Origin: Dimorphilus gyrociliatus
Lineage: Eukaryota > Animalia > Annelida
NCBI GenBank assembly: GCA_904063045.1
Contig: CAJFCJ010000023.1
Location: forward strand, 620,001-684,000
Length of the DNA stretch: 64,000 nucleotides
Direction: 5' to 3'
Shown piece after piece: positions 2,370 through 64,000 of the stretch (within the stretch, counting starts at the first letter, position 1; each line of letters begins with the position of its first letter). The translations under genes and the position numbers were made by a program. The notes beneath the pieces were generated by a model. That model saw only the letters and a program-made list of their open reading frames with translations, was not told the DNA's origin and ran no database searches.

Positions 2370-5300
2370 TTATTTACAGCGATACTCGACCACTTTTTTC
2401 CGACATGTTTTACAAATGACCTCACAGCACCATTTAAAATTACAAAAACACTTGTGTTCTACGATAACAACCCTCCGCACGACGCTTCCTCCGCAACATA
2501 TTGACGGACAAGTTTCTTTAGAGCATCGCCGACCCTTTACACTGTCTTTATTTGTCGCACAAACATCTGGAGATGGTCGTAAATATACAAGGTCATATTG
2601 CGATTTCGATTTTGTCGTTTCAGCAGATACTAAAGCTTTCTTTCTTCCCTTGGAATATATGTTCACTAGGACGGCTTTGTGGAAGAGTTCTCGAATTTCT
2701 GAACTTATGTTACGGAACGGAACAATCTTCCTCCAGCATGTTCTCAATCCGCAAGATCCTGAGGCACCGTGACATTTGCATAATTTCACCATCGTTTCCG
2801 GTATTAACTATCAGAAAAGCATAAAGAATTTTCAATACAATTAAATTTGAGCTCATTCTCAGCTGTTCAGCTGTCCTACATATATATATATATATATATA
2901 CAGTATATACTAATATATTCTCTCTATTGAAAAAGATCAACTATTTTCCTATTAGAGGAATATTTGTAACAAAAGAGACCATTTAACAAAGCTCTGCTCG
3001 TCACTCATCCGTTTATGAAACCCATAAACGCAAAAAAACGACTTATTGGAACGCCATCAATCAACTAAACAATGGTGTCCGATATTCTAAACAGTTTCTG
3101 CGTGAATAACGACTTATTCACGTTAATTCTCACTAGTATACATTGCAATCCCAAAAGGTAAGAAAAGACGCCTCTCCGTCTGGGTTACATAATATTTAAA
3201 TGAAACTTTTAGCTTGACAGCGCAAAATCTTACCTTTGTACCAACTTCGTAATTATGAAGAGCCATTAATTTTCTCGAAATGTACTCTTCTAAAGTTAAT
3301 CCCGATTTCTTCTTTGGTTTTCTTCTATTATATTTCGCTCTTGCGAATTTTCTACTAAATAACATGCCGTAGTGAGCGTTGTCCGAACAGCCAGACCACT
3401 TAAAACTCTATAAAAACATTAAAAAAGACAAACCAATTAGTTTAAATATAAGAAAACATTTTTAATTAAAGTTTTTATGGTAAAAATATAAATTTGATGG
3501 TTTGCAATTTAATAGACAAAAACTAATTGAACTGTTTGTTCAACTAGTAAAAACGATCATCTCTTATAGATTGAATTCAATAGAATTCAAAGAATTCTTC
3601 TATTCAATTCTTCTAACTGCTATTTATCGAAACAACAACAACAACAAAAACAACAACTACTCTTCAATTCTATATAATTAATAATTTTTCGAAAGAAACG
3701 AAGAGAGAGAGAAAGAGAACGAAAAAGAGATAAAGAGAGGCAATGTTCAAACAAAAATTCCAACAACGAGAATTCACTTTGTTCTTTTCTTTTTGTCTTG
3801 TTTCTTAGAGTGTGAAATTTCCACAGAAACGCTTTTGATTCTGGTCCGATAAAAAAAAAGAAAGACAAAGAGACGTTTTGAGAATTGAACGTGTCAAAAA
3901 CAGACCAATTTTTCCCCTTGATCTAGGTCAATTAAAAGAAAGAATTCCAATTGCTTAAATTACTCAAATTGTTTTTTTACATAACTCCGAGTGGAAAGAA
4001 AAAGACTGATGGTCTTTGTTTATCTTACATAACTGCCCAATCTTCTTTTATCCAACTTACTCTGTCAATTATCTGTTCACCTTTGCTTCCCATACATAAT
4101 AATACTTAAAGAAATAGCAGCAGGTGTCTTACAGTTGAGTTACCTACTAGCCTAAATACAAAGGAAAATAGAAATAATTAGAGAAATAATTAAGAGGAGG
4201 GGAAAGAGAAGGAGAAGGGGAGGAAGCTGAAGAAGAAAAAGAGAAAGAGGACAAGGGAGAATTGAATGGAATGTATACATTTTTCTATATAGCTATACGT
4301 ATAGATAGATAGATAGATAGATATGGACAGACAGGCAGACAGGCTGACAGACAGGAAAATTGTTACTTCTAGCGAAATAATATTATACCTACGTGATACA
4401 GTTAAAGAGAGAATAAAGCGAAAGTCAAATGGATAAATTTCGATATTTCCGAGGTTATCGGATACTTCGTATGTCAAAAAACTATGTTATTTTTAGGAGA
4501 TTAATGATACATTAAGCATGACTTATAACTAACAGATGGTTGTTGTTTTTTTTGGTCTACAGTTGCACCTTTGTTCTTAATAACAACCTCCGTTCAGATT
4601 GAATCAAATATTTATCCTATTCAATAGTAAAAGTTTGTTAATACGATTAAAAGACGCGCGTGTCGTATTGGACCAATTACAAAGAGGTAAGGATAAATTG
4701 GATAATAGGATTTAGTGATAGATGTCATCGTAACCTTAAGTTTTTACGTACTACTGACAGTCTAATTATATCTCTCCATCCGACACCTAAAATTCTAAAT
4801 TCGCATTTATTCGTCATTCTCTCGAATCGAATCAGTAATTTTGCACAAAAGCCACCCTAATTTAATTTCACGAGCGTCTATTGTCCTAGACAATTGCTAC
4901 TCGAGCTCAATTTCTGACGTGTTTATACAAAGAAACGTGTTTACCCTATTCAATACAAAAATAGCAGTGAGAAGACTTTTCAAGTGCAATTCGACTATGA
5001 AAAATCTTCGTCCTTAACCACCAAACCCATCGTGGACAACGTTAAAAAAAATTCTTTTGCAATACAAACACGTGGTATAGATAAAAAATAGAAAGAAAGA
5101 GAAAAAGAAAATATTGGTCTATCAACCTCGTTTCCTTCAACGTGAATGCTTCCATCGCAACCGCAGGATTCTAGCCGCCCTGCACTGCAAGCCCGAGTAA
5201 CAGAATGAGTAATTCCAGCCGCCGAAAGAGCTTGTACAAACGCCTTCTCTCTCGTCGCTTTTCGCCAGAAAGAAAAATGTATAGAAAACAGCTGAGTTGG

Positions 5301-45130: not shown

Positions 45131-48100
45131 ATATAGAAGAGGAAAGAAAGAAAGACTATTTATCGAAGCAAACTTTCATTAATTGCAAATTTTTTCTTAT
45201 TTTGTTTTTCCAGCTAATTCTTGAACCTAGACCTATGCATCCGGAGTGGAATACTGGAGCTCACAAACCCAGGAAAATGGAAAGAGTTTCCCGTAATATT
45301 CCTGAAAATAATGTTCCAATATTGAGTTGTGGAGTTCGAATGACCAAACCGGATGCCATGAAACAATGTGGTTATTTGTATGCTATGGGGAAAACAATTT
45401 GGAAGAAATGGAAGAAAAGATTCTTCGTACTACATAAAGTATCCAATTACATTTTTGCATTATGCAGTTATAGACCGAAAAAGAGTGAACCTCAAGAGAC
45501 CTTACAGTTGGATAATTACGTCGTAGATTATACAGAAAATGTGGGTGAATTTCAGGGTGGAAATTGCTTTTTTACCATTGCAAAAATTGGTGAATCAGTT
45601 ACATTCGCGTCTGAAGATGAACAAGAAAGAGCAGCTTGGATTCAAGCTATTTTTAGGGCGACTGGTCAAAAAGATAAGCCACAGGCGCCAAAGGACACTC
45701 AATTATTACCAAGTCTTGGAGCCTCAAAGCAGACAACAGACAAGGCCAGAAAACATGGATTGGATGAATTCTTACAAGCCAGCCCTTGCAAATTCGATCA
45801 CGCTCTACTCTTCCAAACTTTACAGTCACTTACATTGGAATATCGATTAAATGATGTTTATACTAGCTTGGGATGGTTTTCCCCCGGTAAGTGATATAGT
45901 TAAGATGTCTTAAGGCATTCTTCTTAAGGACTATTTCTCTAAGTAATCATCGAGTTAATGATAAAGTCGAATTGAAAAAAAATGAAACAAACAAGGAAGG
46001 AAATTTATAAATTTCATTCGTCCTCGTCTTCGGTATCTTCATTTTTCTTCGTCTTTTCCTTCTTCTTGCTCTTTCTTCCCAAAATAAACTAGTAAGAGTC
46101 CCTAATGAGTTTCTTCGCCTTAAGAAATGGATGAAGAGAGAAAAGAAAGGACGAAGAATGGACAGCCCACAGACAGCTAGATAGATAGAGAAGAAGAAAG
46201 AGGGAAATAGAAAGGAGTAGAGTTTAATGCCATTAATAATGAATTTATTGTTCGTAATCTCTGCAAGACAAAAGTTAATTTGAACAAAACATTCTTGAAC
46301 GTACAGATGCAATTTTCACTGTAACGAATAGGGAGAAGAGAGGGGAAAAAACAAAAAAAAGAGAGAGAGGGACAGAGAAGGAGGAAGGAGAGAATAGTGC
46401 TCGTTAATAATATCATAAAATTCATGCGACATTTAAAGAGAATTATATTTCTTTTTCAACAAAAGAAAATGAATGCAATTTTAAAATCTTAATTATTTAT
46501 CTTACTCGAATAGGCCAAGTTTTCGTTCTGGACGAATATTGTGCAAGATACGGTGTCAGAGGTTGCTGGCGACATTTATGCTATCTAAATGATTTGCTGG
46601 TGAAAGCCGAGAACGGAGTTATGATCGACCCTACCCTCATGCATTATTCATTTGCCTTTTGCGCTAGCCACGTCCACGGAAATCGTCCGGACGGTATTGG
46701 TACAATTACTCAAGTTGAACAACATAAATTCCAAGGAATTAAGCAAAAACTTAAGGATTTGTTGGAGTACCAAATTACTAATTTCCGGTAGATTCCTTTT
46801 CGTTCTCTTTTCTTTTATCGATTGAATGAAGAAATAAAATAATTTTGTAAATGTACAAGAAAAGAAATAAATAAGAAATCTTTCTTTTCCAGATATTGCT
46901 TCCCATTCGGCAGGCCGGAAGGGGCATTAAAAGCTACATTATCGCTCCTGGAAAGAGTAAGTCATCGTTTAGAATTGCATTTTTTATACGTATATTGATT
47001 GCTAAAGAAAAACAACTGTCTCTTTGCAGGTATTAATGAAAGATATTGTAACGCCCGTACCTCCTGAAGAGGTTCGAGCTACCATAAAAAGGTGCCTAGA
47101 GCAAGCTGCTCTGATTAATTACACTAAAATATCGGAGTTTGCTAAAATGGAAGGTAAACTACTTTAGTATTTCAATTATTAAAATAATTTTCAAAATGAT
47201 ATACGTGTGTAATGATTAAATGAAATAACTATAGGCCAAAAAGCGTCAATGCAAAATGAAGGAGGTTAGATCTCAAACATTGTGTTTTCATATTTTTTTA
47301 TGTCAAGATTTCACGCATACAACTATTTCATTTATTCATTTATTTATTCATGCATACACACACGTGTACAAACAAACAAGCAAGCATACATACCACGTTT
47401 TCTTTTCTCTTTTCCTCTCTCATTTCACTTTTATCACTCGAAGATAATTATTTATTGAAAAAAATATCACAAGCTACCATAAAAATATTCATATTTTATC
47501 TTTCATTATTAAGCACAGCGTGCCTTTGAGAATAGCTGTAATAAATTTTCTTTAATAATATATATCACTTTTTATTCATATTCATATACTGTATATACAT
47601 ACAGTGTATATACGCACACACACATACACACACATACTGTATGTTGCATCTACCCTATACGTAACTGTTATATTTTTGTTTATGATCTACTTAATAGATG
47701 CTTACGGTGAAGACGATCAAGATCCGAAAAAGAAGCTTGAAGATTTAATTCGGTTAGCGGAATTGTGTATTGAAGTCTTACAACAAAATGAGGAATACCA
47801 TGCAGAGGTTTGTTGATTAATTAAGCCATTGAAGATTGTCCCGTTTGTAAAATAATTTTACTAATATCGTATGTTTTGTTATACACCCAACTAACTATAA
47901 TTTTCGTCGTGCTCGAAAAATCAGGCATTTAGAACGGTGAGTTTCAGTTTAAAGGAGAAAAAAAAACAAAATAATAATAATAATAAATATATTAATTTAT
48001 TTATATTATTACTAAAAAAATGAAAAAAATAATAATAACGTATTGGTTGAATCGATTCAATATTTCGACTTTTTCATTACTGTTTCATTCTTTTCTTTTA

Positions 48101-56130: not shown

Positions 56131-57279
56131 TTAAAGAATTAAATTTCCGCTCTCATCCGCTGCTAGACATTCCCCAAATGATAATCGATGGCGGGCAATT
56201 TTTGAAATTCCATGATAGTGCACAAAAGCTGCAGCGACTACAAAAACGTGAAATATCTGATGACTCTGGAACCAAATGTCAAATTTTCCTGGCCAAAGCC
56301 GTTCTGGGATTCGAAAAGCGTAAATCAAAGCTCCTCCGATATACAGAGCGGCCATTAGAACTAACCAACCCATAGCGGCCACGTTTATTGCTCGTTCAAT
56401 TCCTTCAACAAGGACGTAATGCATTGCAGGAATAACTCCACTGAGGCCCAAACCAATGAATACTCCGGCTCTTACTGGTCTAAATTTTGGCTGAGCAAAT
56501 TTATCCCACATAGAAACGACAATACAGGCAGTACCCAAAACCAGAATTAAGGTTATGTACGAAATTTTAGGAGCAGTCGTACAATAGAAGCTGTAATAAA
56601 GCCAAGGTACAAATGAACCAATGGTCAACAGAGCAATACCGCAATAATCCAATTTATTAAATAGCCTTCCAACAGACTCCGAATGACAATAGACTGTATG
56701 AAAAAGGGTGGAAAATAGCATACATAATATGGCACCCATAAAGAATGTTGAAAAGATGGCTTTTTCTTGCCATTGAATTTCAATGCTTGGTCTTGCCAAG
56801 AACGATATTGTTATACCAATAAATGCTATGCAGCCGAATAAATGCGTCCAAATGTTTCCAGTCTCAGTATGCACTCGAAAAACTGACTGAAAACAGGCGC
56901 GGAAAGATTCTAACGGAGGACGGTGTCCACCGACCAGAAAATTATTATCTTGTAGCCATTTTGGAAGGTGAGAATGGTAGACAACTCTCCAGCTTTTATG
57001 CCATACTCTTCTAACCAAAGTCTCCGCCTGATCGACGGCATTTTGAGTGTTTTTTAAAAAAGAAATACCCTTATCATCTTCGTTGTCGCTATCAGCGAAC
57101 GGAGGCGGATCTAGTATAGACGATACTCCCGTAGAGACGCACCGTTTCCTTAAAAATTCACTACTCCAATCGTAGTTGTTGTCGTCCCTTTCGTCGTCTC
57201 CGTCGGCAGATTCACTAAGAGGATAGCTCGATTGTTCTTCCTCCGTAGGAGAGAGTGTAGATTCAGTAAAATTAGTCAT
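56131..57279 (-). CDS. ADIPOR: Adiponectin receptor (PAQR family), single coding exon, 382 aa
   Basis: Uninterrupted ORF with LPKWLQDN..L..GHRPPL.SF.ACF.S.FR.HTETGNIWTH, LDYCGIALL..GSFVPWLYYSFYC and PER..PGKFDIWFQSHQIFH; seven TM segments. Confidence 0.97.
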   Translation of the reverse strand: MTNFTESTLSPTEEEQSSYPLSESADGDDERDDNNYDWSSEFLRKRCVSTGVSSILDPPPFADSDNEDDKGISFLKNTQNAVDQAETLVRRVWHKSWRVVYHSHLPKWLQDNNFLVGGHRPPLESFRACFQSVFRVHTETGNIWTHLFGCIAFIGITISFLARPSIEIQWQEKAIFSTFFMGAILCMLFSTLFHTVYCHSESVGRLFNKLDYCGIALLTIGSFVPWLYYSFYCTTAPKISYITLILVLGTACIVVSMWDKFAQPKFRPVRAGVFIGLGLSGVIPAMHYVLVEGIERAINVAAMGWLVLMAALYIGGALIYAFRIPERLWPGKFDIWFQSHQIFHVFVVAAAFVHYHGISKIARHRLSFGECLAADESGNLIL

Positions 57280-63219: not shown

Positions 63220-63292
63220 ATGCGCGCACGCGCTCTTCGAAGCGTTTACCGTTCTTTATAAAAGCCGCTGCGTAAGCGTCTTTTCTATCACA
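63220..63292 (+). promoter_or_regulatory. TATA promoter of the neuropeptide precursor gene
   Basis: TGCGCGCACGCGC at about 63221-63233, TATAAAAG at 63257-63264 and Inr-like TCA at 63288-63290, 25 nt before the ATG at 63315. Confidence 0.6.
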
Positions 63293-63314
63293 GACACGAG
63301 TTTCGACGGAAGAG

Positions 63315-64000
63315 ATGAGAGCTATAATTTTTGGTCTACTAGTATGCCTAGTTCTGGCAAACGCCAACTTTTATGGAAAAAGAGGTAGATATATTTGAAC
63401 TTTTAAACTTGAAGCAGTCATTCTTCTCGTCTCGTTAGTTAAAAGATGATCAACTACACTGTAAATATTGTAAATGAAATCGATAATCATTACGTAAACC
63501 GAGCTAGTCATTCTCTTTTATTCTCTGCAAAATATTCCACTTTATGTCTAATAAAAAAAGATACAATAAGAAGAAACTGAAGAATACGCAAAACCTAACA
63601 CTGGCCTCTTTTCTAAATGAATTTACTTTTCATTATGAAAATTGGATAATAATTTCTCTGCTAAATTCAACTAAGGCGAGAGGAAGGTGAGGAAGAAGAG
63701 GAAGAACACGAGGAAGAAGAAGAAGGGAAAGATAACTCGATTGACGGGAAAAAATTGAGACAATATACTCTTTTTCAAGCATAATAACCGATAATCAAAT
63801 ATCTCAATTGTGTTACTTGGTATAGTTTATTCATTCATTCATTCGTTCGCAATGCGAACACCTACACATAAATATATGTATAGATTTCGGGTCAAGATGA
63901 TGCGTGTTTTTTGCTTGAACAGCATTATTTCGTTAAGCAAGTCGTTCGCTTGCTTTTCTCCTCCTTCTACCTTCTTACTTTTTGTATTTGTTGCTTAGTT
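63315..64000 (+). CDS. Neuropeptide precursor, 5' part: signal peptide + NFY-G-KR (predicted NFYamide, NdWFamide-like); continues beyond the window
   Basis: Exon 63315-63384 encodes MRAIIFGLLVCLVLANA-NFY-GKR and ends at G|GTAGAT (phase 1). A long pyrimidine tract ending TTAG at 63997-63998 gives a likely acceptor, so exon 2 would start at 63999. AxA signal cleavage site, Gly amidation donor and dibasic KR are all present. Confidence 0.8.

Follow-up and report, generated by a model that had tools for sequence, protein, structure and literature searches.

The closest described systems to the gene considered here are the precursors of the NdWFamide family, which Thiel et al. 2021 (PMC8557429, supplementary files 2 and 27) catalogued from gastropods, bivalves, a cephalopod, a solenogaster, nemerteans and phoronids, and which De Oliveira et al. 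2019 (PMC6425005) call lophotrochozoan. These precursors comprise 70–100 residues and consist of a signal peptide with a small last residue, exactly one tripeptide followed by GKR, a spacer whose first residue is acidic or small, and a C-terminal helix that fits L/I..I..[IL][ILVA]..[W/Y], with a C-terminus that is often basic (PMC8557429). The catalogued tripeptides are NWF, NWY, HWY, NYF (Idiosepius) and NFY (Gymnomenia pellucida), and the predicted signal peptide cut immediately precedes the tripeptide and follows x-N-A, x-Q-A, x-T-A or a similar ending (PMC8557429).

An isomerase activity of the Aplysia CNS turns NWFa into NdWFa and, in GFFD analogues, tolerates Phe, Tyr, Trp or Leu as the second residue; the gene of the neuronal L/D peptide isomerase has not yet been identified (PMC11277431). 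The Aplysia NdWFamide tripeptide itself is, as cited in PMC11277431, a purified, bioactive and neuronally localised product of the family. No receptor for the family was found in the literature searched. Among annelids, an achatin receptor of Platynereis is activated only by G-dF-GD (PMC5747525), and the genome of Dimorphilus gyrociliatus has been published with about 350 scaffolds (PMC7854359).

Here we describe a D. gyrociliatus gene with the layout of an NdWFamide precursor. It begins near the right-hand end of the window, by which we mean the whole 64,000-nucleotide stretch that was analysed (contig C23, positions 620001–684000, of the 77.9 Mb assembly of 349 contigs, G000). Sequence beyond the right-hand end was read from a second stretch, L002 (C23:683001–693000), in which a position equals the window position minus 63000. 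An initial annotation of the window had proposed a first exon encoding a signal peptide and the amidated tripeptide NFY, here termed the NFY gene.

A spliced two-exon gene at the edge of the window

The NFY gene is a real, expressed and spliced gene of two exons that codes for a precursor of 74 residues. The RNA evidence consists of assembled contigs from whole-animal or environmental samples, taken from four public runs (X1–X4) of three studies; X1 and X2 are marine metatranscriptomes, and the other two are an RNA library from an invertebrate and a run of 2017 whose label names the organism. The features of the gene are as follows.

Window 63257–63264, plus strand: TATA box, TATAAAAG, located in the sequence; the longest RNA contig begins 30 nt downstream of it, at 63287.
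Window 63287–63314, plus strand: 5' UTR of about 28 nt; RNA contigs start at L002:287, 297, 309 and 329, and contigs cannot fix the true start.
Window 63315–63384, plus strand: coding part of exon 1, with signal peptide, NFY, GKR and the first base of an Asp codon (phase 1); covered by spliced contigs in four runs.
Window 63385–64000 (first 616 nt) and on to L002:1608 past the window end, plus strand: intron of 1224 nt, GT..AG, phase 1.
L002:1609–1763 (G000 C23:684609–684763; window-equivalent 64609–64763), plus strand: exon 2 coding sequence, defined by the splice joint and an open phase-1 frame.
L002:1764 to about 1994 (window-equivalent 64764–64994), plus strand: 3' UTR; contigs end at L002:1994 (X1), 1979 (X2) and 1993 (X4).

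Exon 1 starts with the ATG at 63315 and comprises 23 codons, MRAIIFGLLVCLVLANANFYGKR, followed by the single base 63384. Both this short exon and its donor, GTAGAT at 63385, are present as the initial annotation had described them, and the donor is used in spliced contigs from four runs and three studies. The TATA box claimed there is likewise in place, and its position agrees with a promoter role for the gene but does not prove one. The acceptor is another matter. The sole joint found in contigs of X1–X4 connects 63384 to L002:1609 ('skips 1224, GT..AG (cut +2)'), at an acceptor sequence (L002:1608/1609) that reads TTTTCTCTACAAACACAG/AT and includes a polypyrimidine tract ending in CAG. This true acceptor corresponds to window position 64609, 609 bases past the window end, whereas the acceptor proposed at 63998 is used by no contig joint and the phase-1 continuation from 63999 is hydrophobic and unremarkable. 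The spliced transcript that had been anticipated to the right of the window is therefore present, with its joint at 63384/L002:1609 and not at 63384/63999.

Exon 2 contributes the Asp completed across the joint, a 50-residue propeptide (L002:1611–1760) and a TGA stop, 51 codons in all, and the spliced coding sequence of 225 nt comprises 74 codons and the stop, with no internal stop codons. Contig depths do not rank expression; within run X4, however, the spliced form dominates, because the spliced contig has a k-mer depth of 5369 as compared to about 6 for the contig covering the intron (L002:427–1248). Contig ends are no proof of transcript ends, but 5' ends between 63287 and 63329 and 3' ends between L002:1979 and 1994 agree with a transcript of about 480 nt that begins 30 nt past the TATA box.

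A purine-rich GAA/GAG-type repeat within the intron (63688–63725; L002:688–725) draws hundreds of unrelated contigs at 90–95% likeness in four runs, and the inflated depth over this stretch is a low-complexity artefact and no exon. Long microsatellites of GA/GAGA type lie around and within the locus at L002:1245–1330, 2860–2880 and 3650–3760, two of which were passed over as repeats in the read analysis. Depth in X4 reaches 36–66, about 1% of the exon depth, over L002:901–1100 (window 63901–64000 and just beyond), a signal that probably stems from a dispersed repeat. Near position 63998, one X4 contig departs at L002:1012 into unrelated sequence, without a GT/AG joint.

Comparison with the NdWFamide family

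The predicted precursor shows every one of the shared features listed above for the catalogued family. It has 74 residues, and its signal peptide of 17 residues, MRAIIFGLLVCLVLANA, has a basic start (MR), a hydrophobic core of 12–13 residues and Ala at −3 and −1; written out as MR, AIIFGLLVCLVL and ANA, the leader agrees with the n, h and c regions of signal peptides and with the −3/−1 rule. A single tripeptide adjoins it, with the cleavage predicted as A-N-A/N-F-Y, and GKR (codons 21–23) stands directly after NFY, an arrangement that the initial annotation had read correctly from exon 1. In common with family members, the residue next to GKR is acidic (D) and the C-terminus is basic, the tail of the exon 2 propeptide containing KR and RK. 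The propeptide also carries LKEML near its start and the sequence IMKIDEILNNY at exon-2 residues 26–36.

The latter sequence matches the family's C-terminal helix. We expressed this helix as the pattern [LI]..I..[IL][ILVA]..[WY], located about 35–60 residues after GKR; the pattern is short and was fixed from published members only, although it was chosen with both the family and the query in view. A chance match to this short pattern has a probability of 1.9e-4 in shuffles of exon 2, 7e-4 in random 50-mers of Swiss-Prot composition and 2e-3 in 50-residue stretches of the genome that are free of stops. The aromatic residue of the motif lies 37 residues after GKR, as it does in Lineus. The helix ends in Tyr where most members have Trp, but Tyr is also found in Dreissena, Charonia and Tubulanus.

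The most conspicuous departure is at position 2 of the tripeptide, where Phe occupies the place of the usual Trp. Only the Gymnomenia (Phe) and Idiosepius (Tyr) members share the lack of Trp, and because the catalogued members include NYF and NFY, Trp at this position is typical of the family but not a defining feature of it. The member from the solenogaster mollusc Gymnomenia pellucida has an identical predicted product, NFY-GKR immediately after a signal peptide (there ending in T-T-A), together with a helix motif of the same type (there IAQIVDSW). The remainder of the two propeptides has no recognisable sequence similarity, and the Gymnomenia precursor has 86 residues as opposed to 74. Placement in the NdWFamide family, as first suggested by the initial annotation, thus gains support from precursor length, the single-copy tripeptide layout and the C-terminal propeptide motif when set against the members of Thiel et al. 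2021, whereas its description as a divergent member overstated the distance, with NFY-GKR already represented in a mollusc.

Sequence searches were blank. Pfam returned no match for either exon other than DUF6000 at E = 0.13, a word-based protein search with exon 2 yielded no candidate protein, and phmmer, run with exon 2 on 1.84 billion representatives, recovered no NdWFamide member. Precursors of this kind evolve fast outside the peptide, and such a result for exon 2 is therefore expected. Two phmmer matches of exon 2, one to a TPR/CHAT protein and one to a bacterial Ig-like or Por-tail protein, owed their scores to several repeated segments and were rejected as artefacts of repeats or of helix composition. 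Residues 8–39 of exon 2 resemble single TPR repeats of the CHAT-domain protein (11 of 32 residues identical, repeated about 10 times in the match), and this likeness probably reflects shared helix-turn-helix composition only.

Taken from its architecture and one short motif pattern, with the published sequences compared by reading, the NFY gene is probably a member of the NdWFamide family, and we infer homology, as opposed to resemblance, on the same grounds. The principal alternative is that the gene encodes a secreted peptide precursor specific to its lineage, which came to resemble NdWFamide precursors by convergence and not by descent. Short precursors bearing one small amidated aromatic peptide after a signal peptide could arise repeatedly, and the failure of sequence searches to recover a family member is compatible with such an origin. 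The spacer motif [FL][KQR][DEQG][YF]L, which in the family stands a few residues after GKR, is similarly matched only loosely: its strict form is absent, and LKEML, at the corresponding position, has Met in place of the family's Tyr or Phe. Moreover, neither the family sets nor the Platynereis neuropeptide complement in the literature searched contains an annelid member. Against convergence, the coinciding features are several (length class, position of the tripeptide, Asn at its start, GKR, the acidic next residue and the basic C-terminus), the helix motif recurs at the same distance from GKR with a chance probability of about 1e-3, and an identical NFY-GKR is present in the catalogued mollusc member from Gymnomenia. 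We therefore regard convergence as unlikely and favour membership of the NdWFamide family.

Predicted processing and the identity of the product

Standard prohormone processing proceeds by removal of the signal peptide, convertase cleavage, carboxypeptidase trimming and amidation. Applied to this precursor, the 17-residue signal peptide would be cut off after Ala17 (A-N-A/N), a prohormone convertase would cleave after the Lys-Arg of NFY-GKR, a carboxypeptidase would remove the basic residues, and peptidylglycine alpha-amidating monooxygenase would turn the exposed Gly into a C-terminal amide. The predicted product is one copy of Asn-Phe-Tyr-NH2 (calculated [M+H]+ 442.21), with which a propeptide of about 45–49 residues containing the conserved helix would be co-released. 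Encoded in the genome are Cu monooxygenase domains of the PHM/DBH type and nine P domains of proprotein convertases. The cleavage site and the amidation are predictions from the precursor, and neuronal expression and bioactivity of NFY-NH2 are likewise inferred.

The signal peptide could instead be cut two residues earlier, after Ala15 (V-L-A/N-A-N-F-Y), which would give the pentapeptide NANFY-NH2. Val at −3 and Ala at −1 obey the −3/−1 rule at this site as well; however, such a cut leaves no polar c-region after the hydrophobic core, and every catalogued family member is cut directly before the tripeptide. We consider the pentapeptide improbable, and take the tripeptide as the predicted product.

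Sequence variation bears on a further possibility, namely that the functional product is the C-terminal peptide of 45–49 residues, for instance a secreted gland or defence peptide, in which case NFY-GKR would be an incidental pro-region and the gene non-neuronal. Runs X1 and X2 carry an allele or population variant that is roughly 97% identical to the assembly. Within the coding sequence this variant differs at 2 of 225 nt, one change being synonymous (V10, the only variant seen in exon 1) and the other N59S in the propeptide, as compared to 10 substitutions and 4 indels in the 3' UTR (14 of 231 positions). The coding sequence is thus less variable than the 3' UTR (Fisher's exact p = 0.0036; 0.036 with substitutions alone), which supports constraint on it relative to the 3' UTR. 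A C-terminal product would accord with the very high k-mer depth of the spliced contig in X4 and with the helix being the part conserved across the family; furthermore, one of the two coding differences falls in the propeptide, and the invariance of the tripeptide comes from a very small sample. On the other side, the family product obtained from Aplysia is, in the account cited above, the tripeptide itself, and a GKR that follows three residues directly is a canonical site for amidation. A C-terminal product is accordingly rated as very improbable and NFY-NH2 retained as the predicted product. That the reading frame is non-coding, or open merely by chance within a spliced transcript, is an explanation we give almost no weight: the frame is short, with a first exon of only 23 codons, but it remains open across the splice for 74 codons, varies much less than the 3' UTR at the p = 0.0036 given above, and encodes a complete signal peptide together with a processing site of canonical form.

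A single, unannotated gene in an annelid genome

The back-translated pattern [NH][WFY][FY]GK[RS] has 51 matches genome-wide, as opposed to 54 for a reversed control, and is thus found at chance level. When the sequence upstream of all 51 matches was translated, a Met-initiated hydrophobic leader abutting the tripeptide was present only at the NFY locus. Because this locus alone among the 51 matches has such a leader, the NFY gene is the single NdWFamide-type gene of the genome, and not an extra paralogue beside a canonical one. The two matches that contain Trp, NWFGKR at C19:919813 and NWYGKS at C38:129777, were rejected for the lack of an upstream signal peptide.

The gene is unannotated in NCBI and unlisted among the published neuropeptides of the species. 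The neuropeptide fasta published for D. gyrociliatus (PMC7854359, supplementary file 4) does not include its precursor, and no protein in the collection searched, which includes the NCBI annotation, shares words with exon 2. As a control for annotation coverage, a neighbouring PAQR/HlyIII protein encoded on the same contig, C23 (897,033 bases), is present in this collection via NCBI, from which it follows that the public annotation of the genome is included there. The neighbouring gene itself lies on the minus strand at window 56131–57279 (also given as 56134–57279) and has a single exon encoding 382 residues with a full HlyIII/PAQR (adiponectin-receptor-like) domain (E = 2.4e-76). With the NFY gene, a genome whose neuropeptide complement has been described as canonical gains a gene that had been missed, an example of how peptide genes escape annotation when their first exons are very short.

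The hosts in the NdWFamide family sets compared here all lie outside the annelids, and the NFY gene is the first annelid member within the literature searched, to the same extent broadening the range of a D-amino-acid neuropeptide family to include annelids. The analogy of Aplysia NdWFamide suggests that Phe2 of the predicted product may become D-Phe, and a D-residue at position 2 of NFY-NH2 is plausible from that precedent. Achatin and other GdFxD peptides offer a partial parallel, as they are also very short and have an aromatic second residue, which is where isomerisation takes place in molluscs; their precursors differ, however, in being multi-copy, with unamidated peptides and KR on both sides, and are unrelated in architecture. 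More tentatively, these strands can be joined in a reading that we hold to be possible though doubtful: that this is the first NdWFamide-type gene of Annelida, that the family was present in the common ancestor of annelids, molluscs, nemerteans and phoronids, and that the product may be N-dF-Y-NH2.

The L and D forms of NFY-NH2 would be a synthesisable target for receptor deorphanisation and for chiral mass spectrometry. Were N-dF-Y-NH2 the true product, a culture-friendly miniature worm with a 78 Mb genome would provide a compact system for finding the neuronal L/D isomerase and a receptor of the family. The picture of how such peptides are made is left unchanged by the NFY gene. Elsewhere in the window, an open reading frame or exon on the plus strand at 45202–45894 encodes a PH domain (E = 5e-14).
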